Shown: piece by piece, positions 16,188-61,666 of the stretch
How positions within the stretch are numbered: position 1 is the first letter of the stretch
Layout: the number at the start of each line of letters is the position of its first letter
Made by a program: the position numbers and the translations under genes
Notes under the pieces: generated by a model
The model's input: only the letters and a program-made list of their open reading frames with translations
Told to the model about the DNA's origin: nothing
Databases searched by the model: none
DNA from: Octopus bimaculoides
Taxonomy: Eukaryota
Direction of reading: 5' to 3'
NCBI RefSeq assembly: GCF_001194135.2
Contig: NC_068986.1
Span: 21,581,704 to 21,645,703, forward strand
DNA: 64,000 nt

Positions 16188-16607
16188 ATAAAAGTGCCAA
16201 CAGTTGAAGGTACAGACACTGCCACACCAAATCAACCAACTGAGTCCACAGCTCCTGAAAGTCAACCTAAAGCCACCGAAGAGAAACCTAATGATGAGGA
16301 ATCACAGAATCTACCTTTGCCATTAGCTGTAGTTTCTGTTCCTCTGCTTACTCAGCCCAGTAGTGTTCCATCACAACAGTTTCCAAAGACCCAAACAACT
16401 TCGGAAGTTCCTCAAGAAATTGAAACACTTTCAACTCCTGCTGTGGTTCATGAAAAAGAAGTTGAAGACGATGACAAAGATCATACAGCTCAGCCCGGTG
16501 CCAAAAACAACACAGTGCCATCGGTGCCATCATCACATCGCAGTAATTCACCATCTCCATCTCAACATCCAACTTTGTTGACTTTAACAGAAGGCGGTAC
16601 CGACTAG
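16188..16607 (+). CDS. SYMPK: Symplekin terminal coding exon (low-complexity P/T/E/S tail, ends TEGGTD*)
   Basis: ctag|ATA in frame with the 137-aa ORF; stop TAG at 16605-16607; polyA signal follows. Confidence 0.82.
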   Translation: MKVPTVEGTDTATPNQPTESTAPESQPKATEEKPNDEESQNLPLPLAVVSVPLLTQPSSVPSQQFPKTQTTSEVPQEIETLSTPAVVHEKEVEDDDKDHTAQPGAKNNTVPSVPSSHRSNSPSPSQHPTLLTLTEGGTD

Positions 16608-26066: not shown

Positions 26067-27030
26067 CTCGTCATCATCATCATTTAACGTCCGCTTTCCA
26101 TGCTAGCATGGGTTGGACGATTTGACTGAGGACTGGTGAAACCGGATGGCAACACCAGGCTCCAATCTAATTTGGCAGAGTTTCTACAGCTGGATACCCT
26201 TCCTAACGCCAACCACTTAGAGAGTGTAGTGGGTGTTTTTAGGTGTCACCCGCACGAAGGCCAGTCAGGCGGTACTGGCAACGGCCACGCTCGAAATGGT
26301 GTCTTTTATGTGCCACCCACACAAGAGCCAGTCCAGGGGCACTGGCAACGATCTCGCTCGAAATTCCTANNNNNNNNNNNNNNNNNNNNNNNNNNNNNNN
26401 NNNNNNNNNNNNNNNNNNNNNNNNNNNNNNNNNNNNNNNNNNNNNNNNNNNNNNNNNNNNNNNNNNNNNNNNNNNNNNNNNNNNNNNNNNNNNNNNNNNN
26501 NNNNNNNNNNNNNNNNNNNNNNNNNNNNNNNNATCCTCATCCATTCTCACCACATGTCCATACCAGCGCAATCGTCTCTCTTGCACACCACAATTGATGC
26601 TTCTAATGTTCAGCTTTTCTCTCAAGATACTTACACTCTGACGGGTATTCACATTGACATTACACATCCAACGGAGCATACTGGCTTCATTCCTTGCGAG
26701 CTTACGCATGTCCTCAGCAGTTACAGCCCATGTTTCACTGCCATGTAGCATGGCTGTTCGTACACATGCGTCATACAGTCTGCCTTTTACTCTGAGTGAG
26801 AATCCCATTGTCGCCAGCAGAGGTAAGAGCTCTCTAAACTTTGCCCAGGCTATTCTTATTCTAGCAGCTACACTTTCAGCTTACCCACCCCTCTACTAAC
26901 TTGGTCACCCAGATAGCGGAAGCTATCGACTACCTCTAGTTTTTCACTCTGGAATGAGATAGAAGTTGTTTCCTGTTTGTTTACAGTCTTTATTGCACCT
27001 GAACATCTGCCACATACAAAAACTAACTTC
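26067..27030 (-). mobile_element. 5'-truncated young RTE LINE spanning an N gap
   Basis: GRLYDACVRTAMLHGSETWAVT...ERRLRWYGHVVRM, 3'UTR, tail. Confidence 0.9.
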
Positions 27031-35744: not shown

Positions 35745-36917
35745 TAAAAGGCAGACTGTATGACGCATGTGTACGAACAGCCATGCTACATGGCAGTGAA
35801 ACATGGGCTGTAACTGCTGAGGACATACGTAAGCTCGCAAAGAATGAAGCCAGTATGCTCCGTTGGATGTGTAATGTCAATGTGAATACCCGTCAGAGTG
35901 TAAGTATCTTGAGAGAAAAGCTGAACATTAGAAGCATCAGTTGTGGTGTGCAAGAGAGACGATTGCGCTGGTATGGACATGTGGTGAGAATGGATGAGGA
36001 TAGCTGCATGAAAAAGTGCCACACCCTAACAGTTGAGGGAACCCGTGGANNNNNNNNNNNNNNNNNNNNNNNNNNNNNNNNNNNNNNNNNNNNNNNNNNN
36101 NNNNNNNNNNNNNNNNNNNNNNNNNNNNNNNNNNNNNNNNNNNNNNNNNNNNNNNNNNNNNNNNNNNNNNNNNNNNNNNNNNNNNNNNNNNNNNNNNNNN
36201 NNNNNNNNNNNNNNNNNNNNNNNNNNNNNNNNNNNNNNNNNNNNNNNNNNNNNNNNNNNNNNNNNNNNNNNNNNNNNNNNNNNNNNNNNNNNNNNNNNNN
36301 NNNNNNNNNNNNNNNNNNNNNNNNNNNNNNNNNNNNNNNNNNNNNNNNNNNNNNNNNNNNNNNNNNNNNNNNNNNNNNNNNNNNNNNNNNNNNNNNNNNN
36401 NNNNNNNNNNNNNNNNNNNNNNNNNNNNNNNNNNNNNNNNNNNNNNNNNNNNNNNNNNNNNNNNNNNNNNNNNNNNNNNNNNNNNNNNNNNNNNNNNNNN
36501 NNNNNNNNNNNNNNNNNNNNNNNNNNNNNNNNNNNNNNNNNNNNNNNNNNNNNNNNNNNNNNNNNNNNNNNNNNNNNNNNNNNNNNNNNNNGTACCGCCT
36601 GATTGGCCTCCGTAGGATTTTCGAGTGAGATCGTTGCCAGTGCCCCTGGACTGGCTTGTGCGGGTGGCACATAAAAGACACCATTTCGAGCGTGGCCGTT
36701 GCCAGTATCGCCTGACTGGCCTTCGTGCAGGTGACACGTAAAAGCACCTACTACACTCTCTGAGTGGTTGGCGTTAGGAAGGGCATCCAGCTGTAGAAAC
36801 TCTGCCAAATTTAGATTGGAGCCTGGTGTTGCCATCCGGTTTCACCAGTCCTCAGTCAAGTCGTCCAACCCATGCTAGCATGGAAAGCGGACGTTAAACG
36901 ATGATGATGATGATGAT
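35745..36917 (+). mobile_element. 5'-truncated young RTE LINE spanning an N gap
   Basis: MLHGSETWAVTAEDIRKLAKNEASMLRWMC..., 3'UTR, (GAT)n tail. Confidence 0.9.
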
Positions 36918-40993: not shown

Positions 40994-41999
40994 GTATATG
41001 TCTTTTTATTTATTTATTTTTCTTTATGTTTGACTACCAGAATAAGATTATTTTTCTCTATCAGAAGTAGAGAAACCTAAAGGCATTAGCTGATATATGC
41101 TGTGGTTTTGGACATGTAATAGTGATCACATCTCCACCCTTGTTCCATTTGCTACATTCACCTCTACACAAATTTCTAACCTTCTGTCATGCTCTTTTCA
41201 CACCTTAGTGACCTTATCCACCCACCTTTCCTAATTCTTTGTATTTTCTCTTGTGCTCACTTTCTTGTATCTTGAAAGTATGCTCTGATACTTTGTTGCC
41301 ACCATCTTTGTCTTCTTTCCAGCTACTCCCATCCACCCTTATATAATATCTCCTTTTGTAACAAGACACCTGTGCCCGTTCCTCTATCATATTTTAACCT
41401 CTCAACACCTGGCATATGCTCATCTCCCTGTCTGTGAAGGGTCTTTTCTTTGTCTTGCAAATTCCTTGTGACCTTGCTAGTGCCAGTGTCAGATAAAAAA
41501 AAAAGCACCCAGTACACTTTGTAAAGTTGTTGTATTAAGAAAGGCATCCAACCACAAAAACCATGCCAAGGTAGACACTGGAGCTTGATGCAGTCCTCTG
41601 GTATGTTGGATCCTGCCTAAGCATCAACTCACAGTATAGAAGATGGGTATTAAATGACGATGGTGGTGGTGGAGGTATTGCTGCCACCACCACAACCACC
41701 TGCTGTGTACATATAAATAGATAGTGGCCATAGTAGATGAGGATCAATGAAGATATGGGGGGATGTGGTGTAATCAACTCTGAGGATGTTAAGCCTCAGA
41801 AACAAGATGATGGTAAAGTATGGTGCTATGCCAGATTGATTATCTATCCAATCTATGACACCATTGTTAAAAAGTGTTTTTAAAAAATATTCTTTACTGA
41901 ACAGTAAATTGTTTTTTAAAAAAATGCAGTGAGGTTGCCTACATAAATGGATACAATGTTGTTACTTAATTAAAACAAAATTTTCTTCTTTATTTTCAG

Positions 42000-42155
42000 T
42001 TCTGTTCTTAAGGCAGGAGATGAAAGCAGTCCCCCTCATTACAAATCCATCTTGAGACAAATAGTTGAATTAGTATTTGATCCAAATAAAGTTGACTTGG
42101 TTGATGTTGAATGTAAAACTGGTGGCCTCAAAGATCTTCTGAAAACTGGTTTTGG
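42000..42155 (+). CDS. SCFD2: SCFD2 exon (SVLKAGDESSPPHYKSILRQIVELVF...LKTGF)
   Basis: tcag|T...GG|gtaagg, 156 nt. Confidence 0.94.
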
Positions 42156-42194
42156 GTAAGGAAGTAACTATTACTTAATGAATACAACCCCATA

Positions 42195-44230: not shown

Positions 44231-44241
44231 TTATTTCGTAG

Positions 44242-44374
44242 GCTCTTTATGAATATCTCAAAACCAAGACCCAATGACCACCCCCTCTTGATAATATACG
44301 TAATTGGAGGAATCACCACAACTGAAGTCAAACAAATTAAAGACATGATGGCATCTCTAAAGACAGATACAAAG
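44242..44374 (+). CDS. SCFD2: SCFD2 exon (LFMNISKPRPNDHPLLIIYVIGGITT...TDTK)
   Basis: gtag|G...AAG|gtaaag, 133 nt. Confidence 0.94.
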
Positions 44375-44990
44375 GTAAAGATTCCTATATATGTATTGTT
44401 TTGTTTTTGTTTTTGTCCTCCATATTACAACAATGAATTGAAATCAGCAGGTTCTTGGTTACTTAGGTTAAAAAACTAGATTCCTCAAAATCGCATGAAA
44501 AATAAATGTTTTTAATTCCCCCTCAGGTGGATAATGATGCATTGCTACATGTGAAAATTTAAGAGGTAAATGTTATTTTTGAACTTATAACAGTGAAATT
44601 ATTGTTATAGAAAAAGAAAAAAAATTTTTTTTGTTTTTTTTTGTTACAACTTATTAATAGTAAGGAGTTTGTCTAATTTAGAAAATGGAATTTTTATGCA
44701 CTGTGAAAAACCTGTCTGCTCATGAGGTAATATTACCTTACTTGGCAACAGTAAGTTGAGGGTTGGTGACAGGCTTCTGGACATGGAAAATCCACCTCAG
44801 CAAATTCCATCTGACTCATACAAGCATGCGGAGGTGGATGTCAAAACACTGAAGATGATGATGATGATGATGACACACACACATATGTGTATATGTGCAG
44901 GCATGGCTATGTGGTTAAGAAGTTCACTTCACCGTCATGTGGTTTCAGGTTCAGTCCCACTGCACAGTAGCTTGGGCAGGTGTCTTTTAT

Positions 44991-45100: not shown

Positions 45101-47036
45101 GCATAAAGAAAAAAATGTTCTTGTAGATTTCTACCAATTGAATATGACAGATTGTTTCCACAGTATTTTCTAAAAAAATTAATATCTATGTATAGAAGTG
45201 TATATATGTGTGTGTATGAGTAATATGTGTATGCGTCTATGAGTAATATGTAAGAACCAAGCTTTAATAAACATTCACATAAGAGTCACAGTTGCTAAAA
45301 ATAATGATAGACTCAACCAATATGTTGTATGCTCTGGCAAGATGACAGTTGACTATTCAGAAACAAGCTCCACTGGCACTGTTAAGTAGTTAGTAATAGA
45401 AATGACATCCTGCTGTGAAAATTATTATTGCATCAATGTGCAGAATATACAAATATCTAAAATGCTTCTCCTTTGTGCTGGCATGAGAGAAAAAATAGAT
45501 GTTGAAAAGAAAATTCTTCATAAAAGACAGCACAACTAAATTTTGACTTTAATTCTTGGTTTCAAGTTTTTGCACAAAGCCTGCAATTTTGGGGAGAGAT
45601 GGGTTAAGTTGATTCCATCAACCCCAGTGTTTAACTGGTACTAACTTTATCATCCCCGGCAGCATTTGAACTCATAACTCATGCCACTTAGCATTTTCTC
45701 TAGTGCAGTATCAGTTCTGCCAGCTTGCAGCCTTAACTTTAACTTTAATTATCAATAATCAGACGTAGGGTTGTGCGCTAAAGAAGTTCACTTTGCTACC
45801 TTGTGGTTCTATGTTTGATTCTGCTTTGCAGTACCTTGGGCAAGTGACTTTTCATTAGCTCCAGGTTGACCAGTACCTCGTGAGAGGAAGTTTGGTAGAT
45901 AGAAACTATGCAGAACCATATCACTGAATTTATTTGCTCATGTGGGATTGATTGAAACCTGGAAGATAAAAACAGCAATCCTATTCTGTAATGTACCACA
46001 AAAGCATTGTGAGTGTTTCATAAAATCCCCGAAGACATAAAGGACTTTATCATCATCATCATCATCATCATTTTAACATCCACTTTTCCATGATTGTGTG
46101 GGTCAGACAGAATTTATTGAGGCAGAATTTCCTGTTTCCAAGCAAGGTAATATTTCCACATCAGCAGACATATTTTCACAGAATATTAGAAATAAACAAC
46201 ATTCTTTTATAACAATCGTGTGTCAAGACAAGGAGACACAAACACACACACATGCATATATACAACAGGCTTCTTTCAGTTTCTATTTACCAAAATCCAC
46301 TCACAAGGTTTTTTTTGGCCTTGGGCAATGGTAGAAGACACTTGCTTAAGGTACCAATGATTTAAAATTTAGAAGTGTCACATGAAAAATAAGATGAACA
46401 ATGAATCATTTTCACATTTTTCTTTGATTAATTTCAAACCTGAAGTCACTATGTAGTCACTCAACCTGATAGTAATAGCAGCCAAATCTCCCTTAAGTAA
46501 CAGATTTATTCTCTTAAAAGAAAAAGAGGACACATCAAATCATATGTTCCTAGATATGGTGTCTGAAACAGAAAACAAGAGAAAAAGACTGGATGGTCAT
46601 TACTGGAATGTCTTTGATTATCGATCTCCTTGCTCAGGAATGACACAGCTTTCCATATAAAACAGTCAGAAGACCTTGACATGTCACTTTATATAATTTC
46701 TTCTGAGGGTTTGAATCTAAATATGTAACATTTTTACAGCATATGGAATTGGTAAAATACACTTTTGTAAAGAGTGTGATGATTTCAAAGAAATACTCAT
46801 TCTCTCTCTGTCTGTCTATCTATCTACCCATCCATTCATCCATCCATCCATCCATCCATCCATCCATCCATTCATTCATTCATTCATTCATTCATTCATC
46901 TCTCCCTATTCTTTATTATATATTAATATTTTTGCAGCTACTTTCCTCTTTTTCTACCTTAGCAATTTTATTAATTTTCCCAAAGATTTTGCTAACTTAA
47001 AATGTTTCTTTCTCTCCCTTTATTGAATATTTACAG

Positions 47037-47123
47037 ATTTTATTTGGGAGTACACAGCTTGTGAATCCACTCAGTCTTGCGATGTCAGTCTTATGTGAAA
47101 ATAGAATGAACCCTTGTATATAA
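47037..47123 (+). CDS. SCFD2: SCFD2 last coding exon (ILFGSTQLVNPLSLAMSVLCENRMNPCI*)
   Basis: acag|ATT...TAA; aligns to the human C-terminus (STRLLKP...DRLHP); AATAAA at 47135 and 47184. Confidence 0.88.
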   Translation: MLFGSTQLVNPLSLAMSVLCENRMNPCI

Positions 47124-47577
47124 AAAAAAAAAATAATAAAGGAAGAAATTTCTAAATACATATACACATATATGTACATGTGTAATAAAACAAAAGGTAT
47201 TGCTCAGCATTTTGATTTTTGTATTGTTTTATGTTTGTGATGGATGTCTGGTGGAATGTAGTCTTCTTGAGGTCCCTTTTTATACCCAGTTGAAATTATG
47301 TCCTTCACTCTTAAGAATTATGTCTGTGACTACATTATCCAATGTGTCCATTCCTTATCCAATCCTTTGATATCAACCTGCTTAAGGATGCCCTTGGTTA
47401 TATCATACAAACTTCCTGTTTTAAAGTAATTTAAATTTGCATCTTCCATTAAAAACTCATGTTAATTTATTTTCTGAATACCAGCTTAATAGTGACAAAG
47501 TTGTTTTATTAAATTCTTCATTCCAAATCTAAACTCACCTATGCTAGTGCCATGTAAAAAGCACTGAGTCCACTCTG

Positions 47578-55664: not shown

Positions 55665-58600
55665 CTACTGTCCTTTCCAGGGGTCAACTTGCATTTTAGC
55701 ATACATATCGAAAAAACAAATTTGATAGTTTTTATCACCGTTATTGTCCCAAAAGACATTATCACCAGCTTGATAACAAACCGCAAACTGCATTTTAGTA
55801 TTAAAAACTGTCGGTACATTCATTTCAAAGGTGTACGTTTCATATGGATATGTGTATTCTGTATTAGACAAGCTAGCAGGTACATCTATGCAAGTCTTCC
55901 ATCCATCAAAACTGCACCGTATAAATACGGTTTTCTTTACATTTAAATTTTTAACTTTGATGCTACCAGTTAACATGAAGTCCTTATTAAAAACGTGTTC
56001 TAAAGCTACAAAGTCTCTCTCAAGGCGGCTTTTAAAAGTGACATAATCAGCAGCAGGTTTAGAAACATTCAAGCAAATAGCTGATTTTCTAATATGTTTG
56101 GTTTCTTTTATAGATGAAGCCACATCCCAAGAGGAATTACCTGAGAAAGATGTCACACCTTTCTTCAACACACTTGGGTAGCATTTTGGTAACACAGCTT
56201 CAGTTTCACTTGAACGGAATTTGGAAAGCATTTCTTGCTGAATAGTATGGGTTGATACTATTTCATAGTTTTTATTGTCATTGTTGTCCCAATAAGTCTG
56301 ATCATCACTTTTGTAGCAAACTGCAAAAACAACATGCATGATTTCTTCGAAGGACACTGGCATGGTTAAGGCAAAGCTAAAAGTTTCATATTGATTCGGG
56401 AAGCTGCTAGGAGTATGTGTGGCAGGAATATCTACGGCTGTCTCCCAAAGATTAAATGAGCAACGGAGAAAAACAGATTTCTTATTCCCCATTGGTTTTA
56501 TTTTCACAGTTCCAAGAATTATGTTATTTCGAAGGAGAACATTTTCAAGTGAAACATATGTCGTTTCAAGTCTGTTGCGAAATGTGACATAGTCAGCAGC
56601 TGGTTGACGGAAGCGTAGAGAAAAGATTTGTTGAGTTGCCGGCGCCTCTTTATCAGTTGAACTGGACAAATCTATCTGAGAACTTCTAGGTGATGATGAT
56701 GATGTTGTGGATCCATTTGGTGATGTCATTACAATCTTTGGAATATCTGAACTGATGGAACATTTGGATCGATCTGCTTGAGCATCTGAGCTGAGTTCTT
56801 CCTGTAATTCCTCCATCAAAGCCATCGAAAACATTTCACTAGTTTTCAAGGTTGACTGACGTCTAAGCTTTGGTGATGGCAAAGGTTCATTGTCATCAGT
56901 TTCAATTTGATTTTCATTTTCTTTCAAAGATTTAGCAAGAATTTCTTTTGTTTCTAAAACCTCTTTAATTTTGGAACTTTTATCTATTGAACAACTACTG
57001 TCTTCAGCCTCTTTGTCTTTGTTTTCTGACAGTGTGCTTTCAGTTGTTGGATCCTGAAGTTGTATACATGAAGGATCACTGGTAGAATCCCTTGATGAAG
57101 CTACAATATTTTCTTCAGTAAATTCATGTTTGATATTGTCTGTGGTTTCATCGCTTGGTAATTCAATGTCAGACTTTGCTTCAGAAATTTCTTTTGTTGG
57201 TCCTTTCTCTGGCTCTGATTCTTGCCTTTGTAATGCATCAGTTTTGGTAATAGGATAACCAAAATCAGGTTCAAGTATCATTTTTTTCTCTTCAGGATCA
57301 CTTAAGCTGAAACATTCAAGTTCATGTGACATCATTCGAGGTAATTTGGTTTCAGTTTTGCTTTCATTATTTGAATTATTTTGTTTCTGAGATGAAGGGT
57401 GCCTGACTTTACTCAACAAATCAACTCTTACGTCTGATACAGGTGATGAACATGAGGCATCAGTATCACTATTGAGGGAAATGTCTCTTTTAAATGTCGA
57501 TAAATCTTTAGCAATGTCTTCAAATTCAAAGGATCCACTCCTGTTAATTATTGGAGCTGAGTGTGGTGTTTGAGGTTTCTTTTTAAATGATGAATGTGTT
57601 GTGCCAGTTTTAACATCACCCTCTGTTACCTCGTCTTGGCTACTGTGACCACTGGATCCTTCTAAAACTGCAAATCTTTTTTCATTGCCTTTCAAAGAGA
57701 ACTGAGAAAATTCAGAAAAATGTTGATCTCTATCACCAGATGAATAATAATCACTTGTAATTGATTGATCTAATAAATCATTATCATATGAAACATGTCC
57801 TCCATGCTGGAAGGAATCACTGTCATAAGATGCAAGAAGGTGTTCATTGTTGTCTAGGAGGGAAATTCGCTCATTCTCTACGGAACGATCATCGTAACCA
57901 GATGAATGAGATATTGCTTCTTCCAGGAAATGCGACTCATTCAGATTTGCAAGCAAATTAGTATCTTCACTAATATCTAAAGAATGAGAACCATCTCTCT
58001 GGAAATAAATATTTTCTTCATGCAGATCCAATAATTCACCTCCTGTTTCACTGACACTCATAAATTCTTCCTTGCTGAATCCTTCTTTTTCAAGAAGTTC
58101 TCGAAATTCAAGAAATTCCTCAGGAGGGGACGGAAATTCGTTATCGTTTTCATTTTCTTGCTGATCGTTATTATCCGGTGTAGCTCTGTTTAAATGGTTT
58201 CCATTTTGACTATCTTTTCTGTCATCCTGTGTTTTTTCTACATCTCCATCATTATCATATGGAAATGTAGAAGAAGAGCATTCACTGGGTGAAAAAGATG
58301 GGGCATCATTTTCAAATGATGTCTCTCTCTGGATCTGTTCTTCGGGGGGCAGGTCAACTGAATCAGATGTGGTGTCAAAATTAGTAGAAGCATTATTATT
58401 TACTAGTTCATCTTCAAATGACACTTTTTTATCAAGAATATATTTTCCAAAGGATTTCAGTGGATATTCTCTGAAACTTTCTTGGGTTGTTTCATTTTGA
58501 GAAATACATTTTTGAGCATTGTCAATGCAGGTTGACACAGTCTTATCTGCAAAATCTGATATATTTGTGGGAGAAGAAAATTCCATCAATTTATTCTCTG

Positions 58601-60002
58601 GTGTCGGGGAATCATGGGAACTGTCAGAATCAGGAAGGAAAAGGTCTGTAGAACACACAGTTTCTGAATCAGTAGATAGCTGGCAATTTCTTTTACTTTG
58701 TATAGGTGGTGTAGACTCAAGGAATGTTTCTTCATCATCAGCATCATGTTCATCATCATCTTCCCAAAGGTAAGTACGTGAGTCTTGAGGAAGTAATTGT
58801 TGTTTTTCTGGGACATTATGATAGCCTTCAAAAGAACAAAGATCATAAGATTCCTCTGAAAGTGGATTGTCCACAACACGCACTTGGACCATTTTGTCTT
58901 CATCTAATGCTGTATAAGAACTGTCTGTGCTGATTTGGAATTTTGGTTCGCTTCTATTATTAGCTGATTTGTGATATGGATAATCATCATAACCTGGAGT
59001 CATATCCCATTTATCTGTCAGGGACTGAGAACTGTCTGTAAATGCTTCATTGTTGTGTACCAAAGTAGAAACAATGCATTCCTTGAAAACCTTATAACCT
59101 CCATTTGAATCTCTTTCAATAATTGTCTTCTCTTCTTTATGCAGTGAGCCAGAGCTATGTTTAAAACCCTCGTTAATATAATCTAATACCTTGGGTTTAT
59201 CATTGGTTTCGTCTTCTTTAACATTGAAAGATTGATTTCGGAGACTATCCAGGACACTTCCGTTTGCAATGTCAACAAGGACTGATTCATGAATCTCCTC
59301 TGGTGGATCAACATTGGCAGTGTTGAGACGTTTGGGCTGTTCTAAACAGACACAGTTTTGTGAGACTTCCGGCTTCGTTTCTATTATTTTAGCAACTGTG
59401 GGAGTAAGTTCAATAACAGGTGACAACCTTACTTCGATAAAAGGAGGGGTCTCCTCTCTGGCAAAACGGGTACAAAATTCATCATTTGGTATCTTTTCTC
59501 TAATGAAATCTGGTTGGTCTAATTGTTCAGTTGTATAAGATACATAAGCTTTCAATGGTGTTCCACCACACTTTTTCGAAAGGATTGGTTGACGGTCATT
59601 GATATCAGGGCTGCCATCCTCGATGGACATGTGCTTGGAAAGAGATCTGTTTTTAAATCGTTCTTTCAGTTCTTTTATCATAGGATCCTCGCTATATCCT
59701 GCAATAGCAGTTGGAGGTTTCGTGTAGACCGGATGAATTAGTGGATTTGCATTGGAGTTTTTATTAGAATGTGCACAAATTTTTGTCGGCGAAGCAAGGA
59801 GCACGTTAATTTTCTCAAAACTGTGCGTCTTTTCTTCATTACTCGATTCAGGCTGTCTTTCAATAATATGGAGATCGTGGGGTTTTAACGAAGCAGCGAT
59901 CGGTGTCTTCTCCTCCAGGGGCTTCGCCGCTGCTTTTGAAAAGTCACCGCGTTCATCGTCATCAGCATGACAACATCCCATACGAGAGAAATAATTCCCC
60001 AT
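55665..60002 (-). CDS. Protein phosphatase 1 glycogen-targeting regulatory subunit-like protein (PPP1R3 family), 1445 aa, two C-terminal CBM21 domains
   Basis: Uninterrupted 4.3-kb ORF; two FxQP/SKP-AADY...G-x-(V/I)-K...W...FAVCY...WDNN...NY blocks; KKVSF at aa 525-529; in-frame stops just upstream of the ATG; strong Kozak context (aagaATGG). Confidence 0.9.
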   Translation of the reverse strand: MGNYFSRMGCCHADDDERGDFSKAAAKPLEEKTPIAASLKPHDLHIIERQPESSNEEKTHSFEKINVLLASPTKICAHSNKNSNANPLIHPVYTKPPTAIAGYSEDPMIKELKERFKNRSLSKHMSIEDGSPDINDRQPILSKKCGGTPLKAYVSYTTEQLDQPDFIREKIPNDEFCTRFAREETPPFIEVRLSPVIELTPTVAKIIETKPEVSQNCVCLEQPKRLNTANVDPPEEIHESVLVDIANGSVLDSLRNQSFNVKEDETNDKPKVLDYINEGFKHSSGSLHKEEKTIIERDSNGGYKVFKECIVSTLVHNNEAFTDSSQSLTDKWDMTPGYDDYPYHKSANNRSEPKFQISTDSSYTALDEDKMVQVRVVDNPLSEESYDLCSFEGYHNVPEKQQLLPQDSRTYLWEDDDEHDADDEETFLESTPPIQSKRNCQLSTDSETVCSTDLFLPDSDSSHDSPTPENKLMEFSSPTNISDFADKTVSTCIDNAQKCISQNETTQESFREYPLKSFGKYILDKKVSFEDELVNNNASTNFDTTSDSVDLPPEEQIQRETSFENDAPSFSPSECSSSTFPYDNDGDVEKTQDDRKDSQNGNHLNRATPDNNDQQENENDNEFPSPPEEFLEFRELLEKEGFSKEEFMSVSETGGELLDLHEENIYFQRDGSHSLDISEDTNLLANLNESHFLEEAISHSSGYDDRSVENERISLLDNNEHLLASYDSDSFQHGGHVSYDNDLLDQSITSDYYSSGDRDQHFSEFSQFSLKGNEKRFAVLEGSSGHSSQDEVTEGDVKTGTTHSSFKKKPQTPHSAPIINRSGSFEFEDIAKDLSTFKRDISLNSDTDASCSSPVSDVRVDLLSKVRHPSSQKQNNSNNESKTETKLPRMMSHELECFSLSDPEEKKMILEPDFGYPITKTDALQRQESEPEKGPTKEISEAKSDIELPSDETTDNIKHEFTEENIVASSRDSTSDPSCIQLQDPTTESTLSENKDKEAEDSSCSIDKSSKIKEVLETKEILAKSLKENENQIETDDNEPLPSPKLRRQSTLKTSEMFSMALMEELQEELSSDAQADRSKCSISSDIPKIVMTSPNGSTTSSSSPRSSQIDLSSSTDKEAPATQQIFSLRFRQPAADYVTFRNRLETTYVSLENVLLRNNIILGTVKIKPMGNKKSVFLRCSFNLWETAVDIPATHTPSSFPNQYETFSFALTMPVSFEEIMHVVFAVCYKSDDQTYWDNNDNKNYEIVSTHTIQQEMLSKFRSSETEAVLPKCYPSVLKKGVTSFSGNSSWDVASSIKETKHIRKSAICLNVSKPAADYVTFKSRLERDFVALEHVFNKDFMLTGSIKVKNLNVKKTVFIRCSFDGWKTCIDVPASLSNTEYTYPYETYTFEMNVPTVFNTKMQFAVCYQAGDNVFWDNNGDKNYQICFFDMYAKMQVDPWKGQ

Positions 60003-61109
60003 TCTTCTTTATTATTACACAGAAGAATCTAAAAAAAAAAATAATAAACACAATAAAAATTTTGCGACAAACAAAAACCACGTTCGGCAATGCCGAAAAT
60101 AAACGTCCTTGAGGTAAACTACACTGCCAGGAAGCAACGTCAAGGTCACTGATGTTTTTCTCTACAACACTAACACAGCATCGCTAGCGCAGGCATGTGT
60201 TTATAATAGACCTATTGAACGGCACCAGTAGGCACAATCATCCTTCCCACACAATTAAAATTAAAATTTTGATGAATATTAATAATGATGTTGAGGGGGA
60301 AACATCATATCCAATAGAGATAGCGATAGTGTAATTTTATCAATGAAATTACTACCTTGAAAACGGAAAAGTAATCGATAAAAAATGTGAAACGGAAATT
60401 GTTCGATCCACAATTTACGTACATAAAAGCGTATTTTTTCTCTCCCTAATTATATCGTTTTAGTTTTAATTTTACATTCCTTCACTGTCAATTTTTTTTT
60501 TACCCGTTAGTATTATGTAAAGCAATGTTTTTATTATCATAATTAGTAGATTCCTCAACACATTCCTATTGAGCACCCGTATAGCTTTACCTAGTAATAT
60601 ACCCAGTCGGGCTCTCTCTCACTCACTCACTCACACTCACACACACACACACACNNNNNNNNNNGCTCTCTCTCACTCACTCACTCACACTCACACACAC
60701 ACACACACTCTCTCTCTCTCTCTCTCTCTCCCTAGTGTTCTTCTATCAATGACCGTGATGAGATTATAATTAATAAATCATACATGCAGTAATATAAACA
60801 AACAACGTTATTACTGCAGGGCGACATTAAAAGAGTTACTGGTATAGAGTCGGTCTTTATTTTTTACGATGTTGAAAGTTCGATGACGGTGATATGAGCT
60901 CAAGATACACTGCACCACTTTAACCCTTCGTCTCTCAGACACTGACCAAAAACTCATTAAAATAATTTTTTTTTTAAATGCCATATATCTAGCCGGAGAG
61001 AGAGAGAGAAGAGCACGCATAGGAAAAAAAGAACAACAACAAAAAAAACCTACTGCAAGATTCGATTACTAACTGGAAATGAATGCACTGTCAAAATTCA
61101 GTTACTTAC

Positions 61110-61230
61110 CGAGGGTACTTCTCGTTGGTAAATAATGTCGCATGGTTAACGGTGACAACGGCGACCGCACGATATATCCGTGTCTTTTTTTGGCATTTAG
61201 TAAAGCAGCAATTAGACCTGAAATGCGGTT
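61110..61230 (-). other. Putative non-coding first exon of the PPP1R3-like gene (far boundary uncertain); intron 61109-60029
   Basis: Minus-strand donor CG|GTAAGT at 61109 and acceptor (T)n-AG ending at 60029, 26 nt upstream of the ATG. Confidence 0.5.
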
Positions 61231-61666
61231 TGTTCGGTTCCCATCTAAGTTGCTCTTTCTGCTCCTCTGCTCTCTCTTCCTCTTTCTCTCTGTATACCCG
61301 TCTCTTCGAGATTTCAGCTTCAGTTAATTGCCCAGGCTGTCTGCTGTGATCACGTGACCCGCAAGCAGCTGATAGTTGCCACTCAGTATTTGGCAATAGA
61401 GCCGAAAGCATCCTAACTTTCACTTTTGGTGCATTATGTTCGGTTCCATCTGAAGTTGCTCTTGCTTCTTCTCTGCTTTTCTCTCTTCTTTGCCTCCGTA
61501 TATCCCCTCTCTCTCTCTCTCTCTCTTTGAGATTTCAGCTTCTCTTAATTGCCCAAGCTGTCTGCCGTGATCACGTGACCCGCAACCCAGCTGATAGATA
61601 GTTGCCACTCAGAATTTGGCAATAGAGCCGAAAGCACCCTAACTTTCACTTTTGATGCATTATGTT
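61231..61666. promoter_or_regulatory. Tandemly duplicated ~206/226-bp unit, each copy with GATCACGTGACC and CAGCTGATAG
   Basis: Units 61231-61436 and 61437-61662 align throughout; CACGTG at 61351 and 61572. Confidence 0.6.

Follow-up and report, generated by a model that had tools for sequence, protein, structure and literature searches.

The 64,000-nucleotide stretch of the Octopus bimaculoides genome analysed here (contig NC_068986.1, positions 21,581,704 to 21,645,703; in the following, the window) contains on its minus strand, at positions 55665..60002, an open reading frame (ORF) for a protein of 1445 amino acids (aa). Judged by its conservation, the locus is a genuine protein-coding gene under purifying selection. 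According to domain and fold comparisons, its product is a highly divergent, PPP1R3B-like paralogue of the PPP1R3 family, the glycogen-targeting subunits of protein phosphatase 1 (PP1), and has two complete PPP1R3-type CBM21 domains in tandem. By residue comparison, neither copy has kept the aromatic clamp of the glucan-binding site II in any of the five cephalopods compared. The PP1 glycogen-targeting subunits are a textbook case of a promiscuous phosphatase gaining specificity and, to our knowledge, the characterised PPP1R3 members all have one CBM21, the glucan site of which is intact. The reading that we favour, with moderate confidence and from sequence evidence, is that the octopus protein might serve as a membrane-proximal PP1 scaffold for glycogen-metabolising enzymes and not as a classical glycogen-particle anchor.

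Two CBM21 domains in one coding sequence

In the ORF listing for the 64-kb window, the reading frame starts with ATG and runs uninterrupted through 1445 codons to its stop, exactly as the first-pass annotation of this DNA had claimed, and the in-frame stops TAA TAA TAA lie immediately upstream of the ATG. An exact match of the protein sequence locates the gene at about 21.63 Mb of chromosome CM046606.1 (GCA_001194135.2). The DNA of the window is eukaryotic and rich in AT (GC about 0.23-0.39), with ten runs of N, none of which falls inside this ORF. Since the local GC content is about 36%, an open frame of 1445 codons is not a product of chance. In Nei-Gojobori comparisons, the ratio of non-synonymous to synonymous substitution rates (dN/dS) of the whole ORF amounts to 0.15 against a sister Octopus and 0.22 against Argonauta. 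Split by region, these two comparisons give 0.18 and 0.26 in the N-terminal part, 0.06 and 0.10 in CBM21 copy 1 and 0.00 and 0.03 in copy 2, while the inter-domain linker has 0.09-0.11. Because dN/dS is well below 1 throughout, every segment of the ORF is constrained as coding sequence. The sister Octopus is represented by Logan contigs, which are genomic DNA and served for these dN/dS estimates. Four of them (L004-L007, 6.1-6.6 kb) had been considered as possible transcripts, which was rejected because their colinearity with the genome extends over 6.6 kb and their ends are microsatellites.

The two CBM21 blocks were found at the C-terminus at the positions proposed before. Copy 1 comprises aa 1127-1250 (56253..56624, minus strand) and copy 2 aa 1309-1430 (55713..56078, minus strand), both spans including the family-specific N-terminal strand and helix. 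When the two segments were scanned separately against Pfam, both gave significant matches to CBM_21 (gathering cut-off 28.9 bits), with 83.0 bits for copy 1 (aa ~1145-1248, E 2.4e-23) and 86.7 bits for copy 2 (aa ~1327-1428, E 1.6e-24); the Pfam family CBM53 scores weakly on both copies. A scan of the whole protein against NCBIfam gave no match. The two copies share about 43-44% identity (E 2e-41), and their best sequence matches in the PDB are 2EEF, human PPP1R3B (6e-29), for copy 1 and 7QM2, PPP1R3C/PTG (4e-24), for copy 2.

In an AlphaFold2 (AF2) model of aa 1120-1445, the copies appear as two separate beta-sandwiches, with a predicted local distance difference test (pLDDT) of 75-93 for copy 1 and ~71-86 for copy 2. 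They are connected by ~55-60 residues of a conserved linker (aa 1251-1308; 56079..56252, minus strand), which is predicted to be flexible (pLDDT 32-49, model residues 143-198). Because of this low linker confidence and a predicted template modelling (TM) score of only 0.48 (pTM), the model contains no confident inter-domain packing. The best PDB fold matches of both copies, obtained with Foldseek, are PTG CBM21 crystal structures (TM 0.89-0.91, root mean square deviation 1.5 A). Both copies also have the extra beta0 strand and alpha1 helix in the model, and among starch-binding domains such an additional N-terminal strand and helix are reported only for G_M and G_L (PMC6235537). The C-terminal tail FFDMYAKMQVDPWKGQ (aa 1431-1445; 55668..55712, minus strand), where AF2 confidence is low, is nearly invariant in the cephalopod alignment.

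Glucan site II and the site I face

In PTG, site II (N177, F180, E181, K182, Y203 and D214 in PTG numbering) is the dominant glucan site, with F180 buried in the cyclodextrin ring (PMC9582199), and in G_M it is the only site binding cyclodextrin in solution (PMC6235537). Site I (R187, W193, Y196, C235, W246, N248 and N253) is ancillary for glucan (PMC9582199, PMC6235537); it contacts cyclodextrin in PTG crystals and forms an ancillary glucan site in the Rhizopus CBM21 (PMC9582199). In G_M, site I recruits glycogen synthase, and the exchange N228A (corresponding to N253) abolishes both GYS1 recruitment and the enhanced dephosphorylation.

The residues of both sites were mapped, without gaps in the site region, in five cephalopods and compared with 148 single-domain relatives. 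The two aromatic positions of site II are changed throughout: F180, aromatic in 140/148 relatives, is N/G in copy 1 and V/G in copy 2, and Y203, which is Y/F in 133/148, is H in copy 1 and L in copy 2. The other site II residues are affected to different extents. N177 (N in 142/148) is P/S in copy 1 and N, or H, in copy 2; E181 (E in 89/148) is K in copy 1 and K/E in copy 2; D214 (D in 132/148) is E in copy 1 and E, or K, in copy 2; and K182 (K in 147/148) is K/R in copy 1 and K in copy 2. For O. bimaculoides this means a degenerate site II with P1170, N1173, K1174, H1196 and E1206 in copy 1 and with V1355, K1356, L1378 and E1388 in copy 2, where N1352 is retained. Site I is retained in copy 1 (R1180, W1186, W1238, N1240, N1245) as well as in copy 2 (R1362, W1368, W1418, N1420, N1425). 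The residues equivalent to R187, W193, W246, N248 and N253 are invariant in both copies in 5/5 cephalopods, and residue 196 is A/S in copy 1 and C/F in copy 2. The canonical cephalopod paralogue (P0011) keeps the site II residues N-x-x-F-E-K, Y and D. From this pattern it is inferred that selection preserves the fold and the site I face, and probably neither module binds glycogen in the classical way.

The first-pass annotation had suggested that the duplicated architecture could bind glycogen bivalently. In its full form, this alternative describes a bona fide glycogen-targeting PP1 subunit, in which both CBM21s bind glycogen and provide a bivalent, high-avidity attachment to the particle. 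Both domains are indeed complete PPP1R3-type folds under strong purifying selection, site I with its known cyclodextrin contacts (PMC9582199) is intact in both, K182 in both copies and N177 in copy 2 are still present, and a duplication could offset weak affinity of the single sites. However, the site affected is the sole solution site of G_M and the dominant one of PTG (PMC6235537, PMC9582199): every cephalopod orthologue has N/G/V in place of its buried Phe and H/L in place of the partner Tyr, and a canonical cephalopod paralogue with intact site II already coexists. Hence, bivalent glycogen binding is doubtful, and we regard a glycogen-targeting subunit of this kind as rather unlikely.

Putative PP1 docking and membrane scaffold

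The protein has a single strict match to the RVxF-type PP1-docking motif, KKVSF (aa 525-529; 58416..58430, minus strand), while 0.057 matches are expected per composition-matched shuffle of the N-terminal region. It lies inside a conserved island, K-x-I-L-x-K-x-V-S-F-E-x-E, at the same position in 5/5 cephalopods, and its KKxS context resembles the sequence RRVS67F of G_M that is regulated by protein kinase A (PKA; PMC6235537). In decapodiforms a second RVxF motif, KRVSFDN, occurs ~40 aa after the conserved one (O. bimaculoides aa ~560-566), which in octopods has decayed to RETSF. A motif scan of the 1445-aa protein showed that SALK, SILK and MyPhoNE motifs are absent.

The canonical invertebrate layout consists of MPVDF..YLLSSSPPGF, the docking region KKxVSFAD..G..L..VR.M.EPSD.PP.L, ~25 aa, the CBM21 and W.EFS.W...PYW. 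The first-pass reading as a glycogen-targeting-like subunit is weakened in that a PP1-docking module of this type adjoining the CBM21 is absent here: the sole RVxF lies ~600 aa upstream of the first CBM21, compared to a canonical spacing of ~55 aa, and none of the canonical flanks (MPVDF..SSSPPGF, G..L..V[RK].M.EPSD.PP, C-terminal PYW) was detectable by profile-profile alignment with 36 canonical members. Two possible remnants were considered, IP(K/R)I(V/T)MTSPNGSTT, located upstream of copy 1, as vestigial V[RK].M.EPSD.PP docking segment and KCSIS as decayed RVxF. Both are unsupported, as the alignment stops at the CBM21 and KCSIS is deleted in decapodiforms. Because the adjacent docking region and an intact site II are both missing, the protein is regarded as a divergent variant and not as an ordinary PPP1R3 member.

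The consensus for myristoylation is G2 with S/T at position 6, and palmitoylation can take place on adjacent Cys residues. The octopus protein starts with MGNYFSRMGCC (aa 1-11; 59970..60002, minus strand), a candidate N-myristoylation (G2, S6) and Cys-palmitoylation motif. The start MGN(Y/H)FSRMGCC is conserved in octopods and decapodiforms; in the Acanthosepion genome it is present in frame, although the annotation there begins at the second Met. This MG...CC start looks like a dual lipid anchor, and no transmembrane helix is predicted anywhere in the 1445-aa protein.

The ~1130 aa ahead of the CBM21s had been described as acidic, Ser-rich and probably disordered, and composition, charge-hydropathy and AF2 agree with this. 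The N-terminal 1130 aa contain 13.6% S, 10.7% E and 9.0% D (D+E 19.7% vs K+R 10.3%), residues 101-1100 fall on the disordered side of the charge-hydropathy boundary, and the AF2 prediction, which is supportive only given its shallow four-sequence alignment, shows a mean pLDDT of 31, with 1078/1130 residues below 50 and few short helices. The N-terminal 1119 aa gave no Pfam or PDB sequence match, and no homologue was detectable outside cephalopods in the protein collections searched. In decapodiform orthologues, a long poly-Asp/Glu expansion aligns to O. bimaculoides aa ~415-420. Several islands are invariant in the cephalopod alignment. The island FPSPPEEFLxFRELL (aa 623-637), helical in the AF2 model, overlaps the short conserved helix FPSPPEEFLEFRELLEK (aa 624-640; 58083..58133, minus strand), and F623-P627 and F633-L637 are invariant; the predicted helix at 628-640, with pLDDT up to ~70, is the most confident element of the N-terminal region. 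A further invariant island, LRRQSTLKTSEMF (aa 1046-1058; 56829..56867, minus strand), contains an RRxS basophilic-kinase consensus, and the others are DYYSSGDRxQH (aa 751-761), GSFEFEDI (aa 823-830), HELEC..DP.E.K.ILEP (aa 893-912) and MTSPNGSTT (aa 1092-1100).

In the favoured scaffold reading, myristoylation and palmitoylation of the N-terminus would tether the protein to a membrane, a functional counterpart, at the other end of the chain, to the membrane anchor that PPP1R3A has at its C-terminus. Docking of the PP1 catalytic subunit would fall to KKVSF, the one conserved RVxF, which has a KKxS phospho-acceptor like that of G_M. The two CBM21 modules might then mainly form a bivalent platform on which a site-I ligand is recruited; the most plausible candidate is glycogen synthase, the enzyme recruited by the equivalent Asn of G_M. 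Glucan contact would be at best weak, mediated by site I with avidity from the two copies. A more far-reaching version, which we consider speculative, sees a coleoid lipid-anchored giant PP1 scaffold in which both CBM21s gave up carbohydrate binding and became a bivalent protein-recruitment device that might, for example, clamp the oligomeric glycogen synthase at membranes.

Several observations weigh against the scaffold reading. About 600 residues separate the RVxF from the first CBM21, neither the PhiPhi strand nor the E-P-S-D-x-P-P segment follows the motif, and the homology seen in profile alignment does not reach beyond the CBM21 in the upstream direction. Across the whole family the site I tryptophans do not vary (148/148 and 145/148), so their retention may reflect a fold constraint. 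Residual glucan binding is possible, since site I binds cyclodextrin in PTG crystals and in the Rhizopus CBM21 (PMC9582199), and K182 in both copies and N177 in copy 2 are kept. The predicted disorder, finally, is drawn from composition and an AF2 run with four sequences.

Some of these points also suit a different explanation, namely that the protein is not a PP1 regulator at all and that its CBM21s were co-opted as generic protein- or glycan-interaction domains of a cephalopod-specific scaffold, the RVxF being fortuitous. The distance of the RVxF from the CBM21 and its missing canonical flanks, the absence of the MPVDF..SSSPPGF N-terminus and the C-terminal PYW, and an N-terminal region of 1119 aa without detectable homologue outside cephalopods are all compatible with it. 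Nevertheless, one strict RVxF in 1445 aa compares with 0.057 matches expected, the motif is kept across the octopod-decapodiform split within a 13-residue island, and its sequence KKVSF-E-D is close to KKxVSF-A-D of the family, to which decapodiforms add KRVSFDN. A role unrelated to PP1 thus seems improbable to us. That the locus is an annotation artefact, whether an ORF open by chance or in decay, a pseudogene or the product of a wrongly joined assembly, is effectively refuted: the gene model was made from genomic sequence alone, the Logan contigs are genomic and the window has 10 assembly gaps, but no gap lies inside the ORF, which is intact in five independent assemblies from both coleoid superorders, with dN/dS well below 1 in each segment and with conserved candidate exon 1, splice signals and synteny.

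Lineage, gene structure and relation to known systems

Orthologues with the same architecture were found in Argonauta hians (1423 aa, 76% identity), Acanthosepion pharaonis (1556 aa, 47% identity), a decapodiform assembly of the European Nucleotide Archive (ENA; 1594 aa as called), Octopus sinensis and O. vulgaris (1442 aa each) and the Logan-assembled sister Octopus (1453 aa). The orthologous ORFs of Argonauta, Acanthosepion, the ENA contig and the Logan contigs are uninterrupted, as each gene has a span of 3 x (length + 1). The protein deposited for the ENA contig (ERZ21867824, L008, 3001-7785) has a spurious 40-residue C-terminal extension past ...WKGQ, and the locus does not retranslate to this extension, which is evidently the result of a gene caller reading through the true stop, probably with a non-standard genetic code.

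An exhaustive phmmer search with the two-domain region as query against 1.84 billion representative proteins gave 2095 matches at E<=1e-3, and all statements on architecture in this search refer to the best 150 of these, so that a very divergent tandem elsewhere could lie outside them. Only two clusters covered both domains, one from octopods (703 bits) and one from decapodiforms (572 bits). The next score was 123 bits, from proteins of 300-400 aa that match a single copy, and all remaining matches were single-CBM21 proteins. Seven listed matches with two matched stretches were rejected as further tandems, because in each of them a loop insertion divides one CBM21 into two stretches (insect Gbs-70E-like). 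Profile and word searches of a 5.8-billion-cluster collection revealed no further tandem protein or distant orthologue and returned the same four clusters only. The nearest relatives are PPP1R3B-like proteins of 300-400 aa from oyster, clam, annelid and Argonauta. The expectation that the tandem is not common across metazoans was therefore borne out among the matches considered. The narrower question raised by the first-pass annotation, a restriction to molluscs or cephalopods, was answered in part: the gene is present in Octopoda and Decapodiformes and had no counterpart in the protein collections searched, with Nautilus outside the search. As far as detectable in these protein collections, with the Nautilus and squid genomes not covered at the DNA level, it would be restricted to coleoid cephalopods.

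The sequence itself is already known as a prediction, with unreviewed entries such as XP_029637411.1 ('uncharacterized') and CAI9724299.1 ('PPP1R3B-like isoform X2'). Literature searches for LOC115212818, for PPP1R3 with octopus and for tandem or double CBM21 retrieved no paper describing this locus, any PPP1R3 of cephalopods or a protein with CBM21 in tandem; a paper retrieved for tandem or double CBM21 concerns a fungal protein with a single CBM21, and a query for CBM21 with cephalopod was too loose to inform. For the lineage restriction, the tandem arrangement and the double loss of site II there seems to be no earlier description.

The common start motif (Q/K)PAADYVTF(R/K)xRLE, which had been taken to point to an internal duplication, is present at both domain starts (RQPAADYVTFRNRLE in copy 1 and SKPAADYVTFKSRLE in copy 2), but the 148 single-domain relatives have the consensus QPASDYLAFREKLE at the same columns. 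Because the motif is largely the family-wide consensus, it is weak evidence for duplication. In a neighbour-joining tree of 158 domains, the copies were sisters in only 26/200 bootstraps, whereas each copy formed a clade across octopods and decapodiforms in 200/200. In the order of nearest relatives, the copies come 26th and 11th for each other, and the identity to their best outside relatives (47-51%) is above that between the copies (~43%). They have 3 rare residues in common, compared to a null mean of 3.0-3.5, and the protein with which copy 2 has the most rare residues in common (10) is the canonical PPP1R3B-like one of Argonauta. Considering the short domain and the neighbour-joining method, this result means no support for a duplication, not its refutation. 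Because each copy forms its clade across both groups, the two-domain state predates the octopod-decapodiform split. It could have originated by internal duplication or, alternatively, by fusion of paralogues. A profile alignment with hhalign extends weakly from copy 1 into the linker as far as SSWDVAS, onto the canonical tail behind the CBM21, which hints that each unit may once have been a 'CBM21 plus tail'.

The most economical gene model, based on conservation and splice signals, would consist of a non-coding exon 1, one intron in the 5' untranslated region (UTR) and the complete coding sequence (CDS; 55665..60002, minus strand, 1445 codons plus stop) in a single exon. The single-exon CDS claimed before is supported by uninterrupted ORFs in at least four genomes and in the ENA assembly, all of them genomic sequence. 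It is probably the family norm and not a peculiarity of the tandem gene, as the gene of the canonical 304-aa Argonauta PPP1R3B-like protein likewise has an intronless CDS in a single ORF. The candidate exon 1 (5' UTR) is a block of 326 bp at 61110..61435 (minus strand) with 84% identity and 4 indel columns in comparison to Argonauta, while its flanks have just 43% identity. Because of these indels the block is not coding; it ends in the splice donor CG|GTAAGT, with GT at 61109-61108, and probably represents exon 1, possibly together with the proximal promoter. It also contains a palindromic E-box, GGTCACGTGATC (61348-61359), of the USF/MITF-TFE 'CLEAR'-like type. The candidate intron 1 (60029..61109, minus strand) leads from this donor to a polypyrimidine tract and AG acceptor (60030-60029) upstream of the ATG, which are conserved in the sister Octopus and Argonauta. 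Its length of ~1.08 kb is uncertain because of a 10-N assembly gap (60655-60664) in a (GT)n/(GAGT)n microsatellite, at which the sister-Octopus contigs also break. An Rfam scan of 53.5-62.5 kb gave no matches.

In the remaining window, the 3' exons of a Sec1-family gene (~41974-42156, ~44240-44380 and ~47019-47150, plus strand) are convergent with the CBM21 gene. The family assignment comes from a weak PF00995 match on one exon (E 0.008). The same neighbour is found in the same orientation in Argonauta, i.e. the synteny is conserved. Transposon-like repeated ORF fragments (MLHGSETWAVTAED.RKLA.NEASMLRWMCNV...RLRWYGHVVRMDED) and a second repeated unit (QSNLAEFLQLDALPNANHSESVVGAFTCHPHE) occur at 26239-26808 (minus strand) and 35783-36049 (plus strand) as well as at ~6650, ~26136, ~36835 and ~38900; most of them adjoin assembly gaps, and the one fragment that was scanned has no Pfam match. 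A Pro/Ser/Thr-rich ORF of 137 aa at 16194-16607 (plus strand), also without Pfam match, may be one exon of some unrelated gene or have arisen by chance.

Among known systems, the invertebrate PPP1R3B-like or G_L-type proteins (Crassostrea PPP1R3B, Argonauta GAB1604902.1) have in common with the octopus protein the PPP1R3-type CBM21 including the extra strand and helix (domain identity 43-50%), a KKxVSF-type RVxF, an intronless CDS and the WDNN..N site I surface. In contrast, the octopus protein has 4-5 times their length, two CBM21s where they have one, and an RVxF ~600 instead of ~55 aa away from the domain, does not possess MPVDF..SSSPPGF, the docking extension and PYW, and has a degenerate site II in both copies. 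PPP1R3A/G_M (1109 aa) is similarly giant, mostly disordered and membrane-tethered (putatively so in the octopus protein) with one RVxF, the Ser of which is the PKA site controlling PP1 binding, and with a CBM21 that recruits glycogen synthase through N228 of site I. However, G_M has its RVxF and single CBM21 at the N-terminus and a transmembrane anchor at the C-terminus, its site II is intact and it binds glucan, whereas the octopus protein has its putative anchor, by lipidation, at the N-terminus and, as the first-pass annotation had correctly stressed, the CBM21s at the C-terminus; the long regions are without sequence homology. In its proposed overall logic, the octopus protein is closest to PPP1R3A, with the polarity reversed. 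Insect Gbs-70E-like proteins (P0093, P0099 and P0144; 620-830 aa) likewise combine a long low-complexity N-terminal region with a C-terminal CBM21, but it is a single one with a loop insertion, with canonical adjacent RVxF/docking region and intact site II. Outside this family, tandem starch-binding arrays are known from starch synthase III, with three CBM53, and from amylases with tandem CBM25/CBM20. They are also repeated beta-sandwich modules on flexible linkers with presumed multivalency, but they belong to other CBM families, are joined to catalytic domains of plants, algae or bacteria, keep their aromatics and are not PP1 regulators.

Two CBM21s without glucan clamp but with the recruitment face would be a natural separation-of-function variant. 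Hence, the tandem paralogue could reveal what site I does alone and whether a CBM21 can become a pure protein-binding module, and it could also show how PP1 is targeted in cephalopod tissues. Moreover, it adds a clear example to the gene innovations that are specific for coleoids. If the reading as a bivalent protein-recruitment device is true, the octopus protein would represent a natural tandem 'pseudo-CBM' in the G-subunit family and point to a lineage-specific organisation of glycogen metabolism in these energetically unusual animals.

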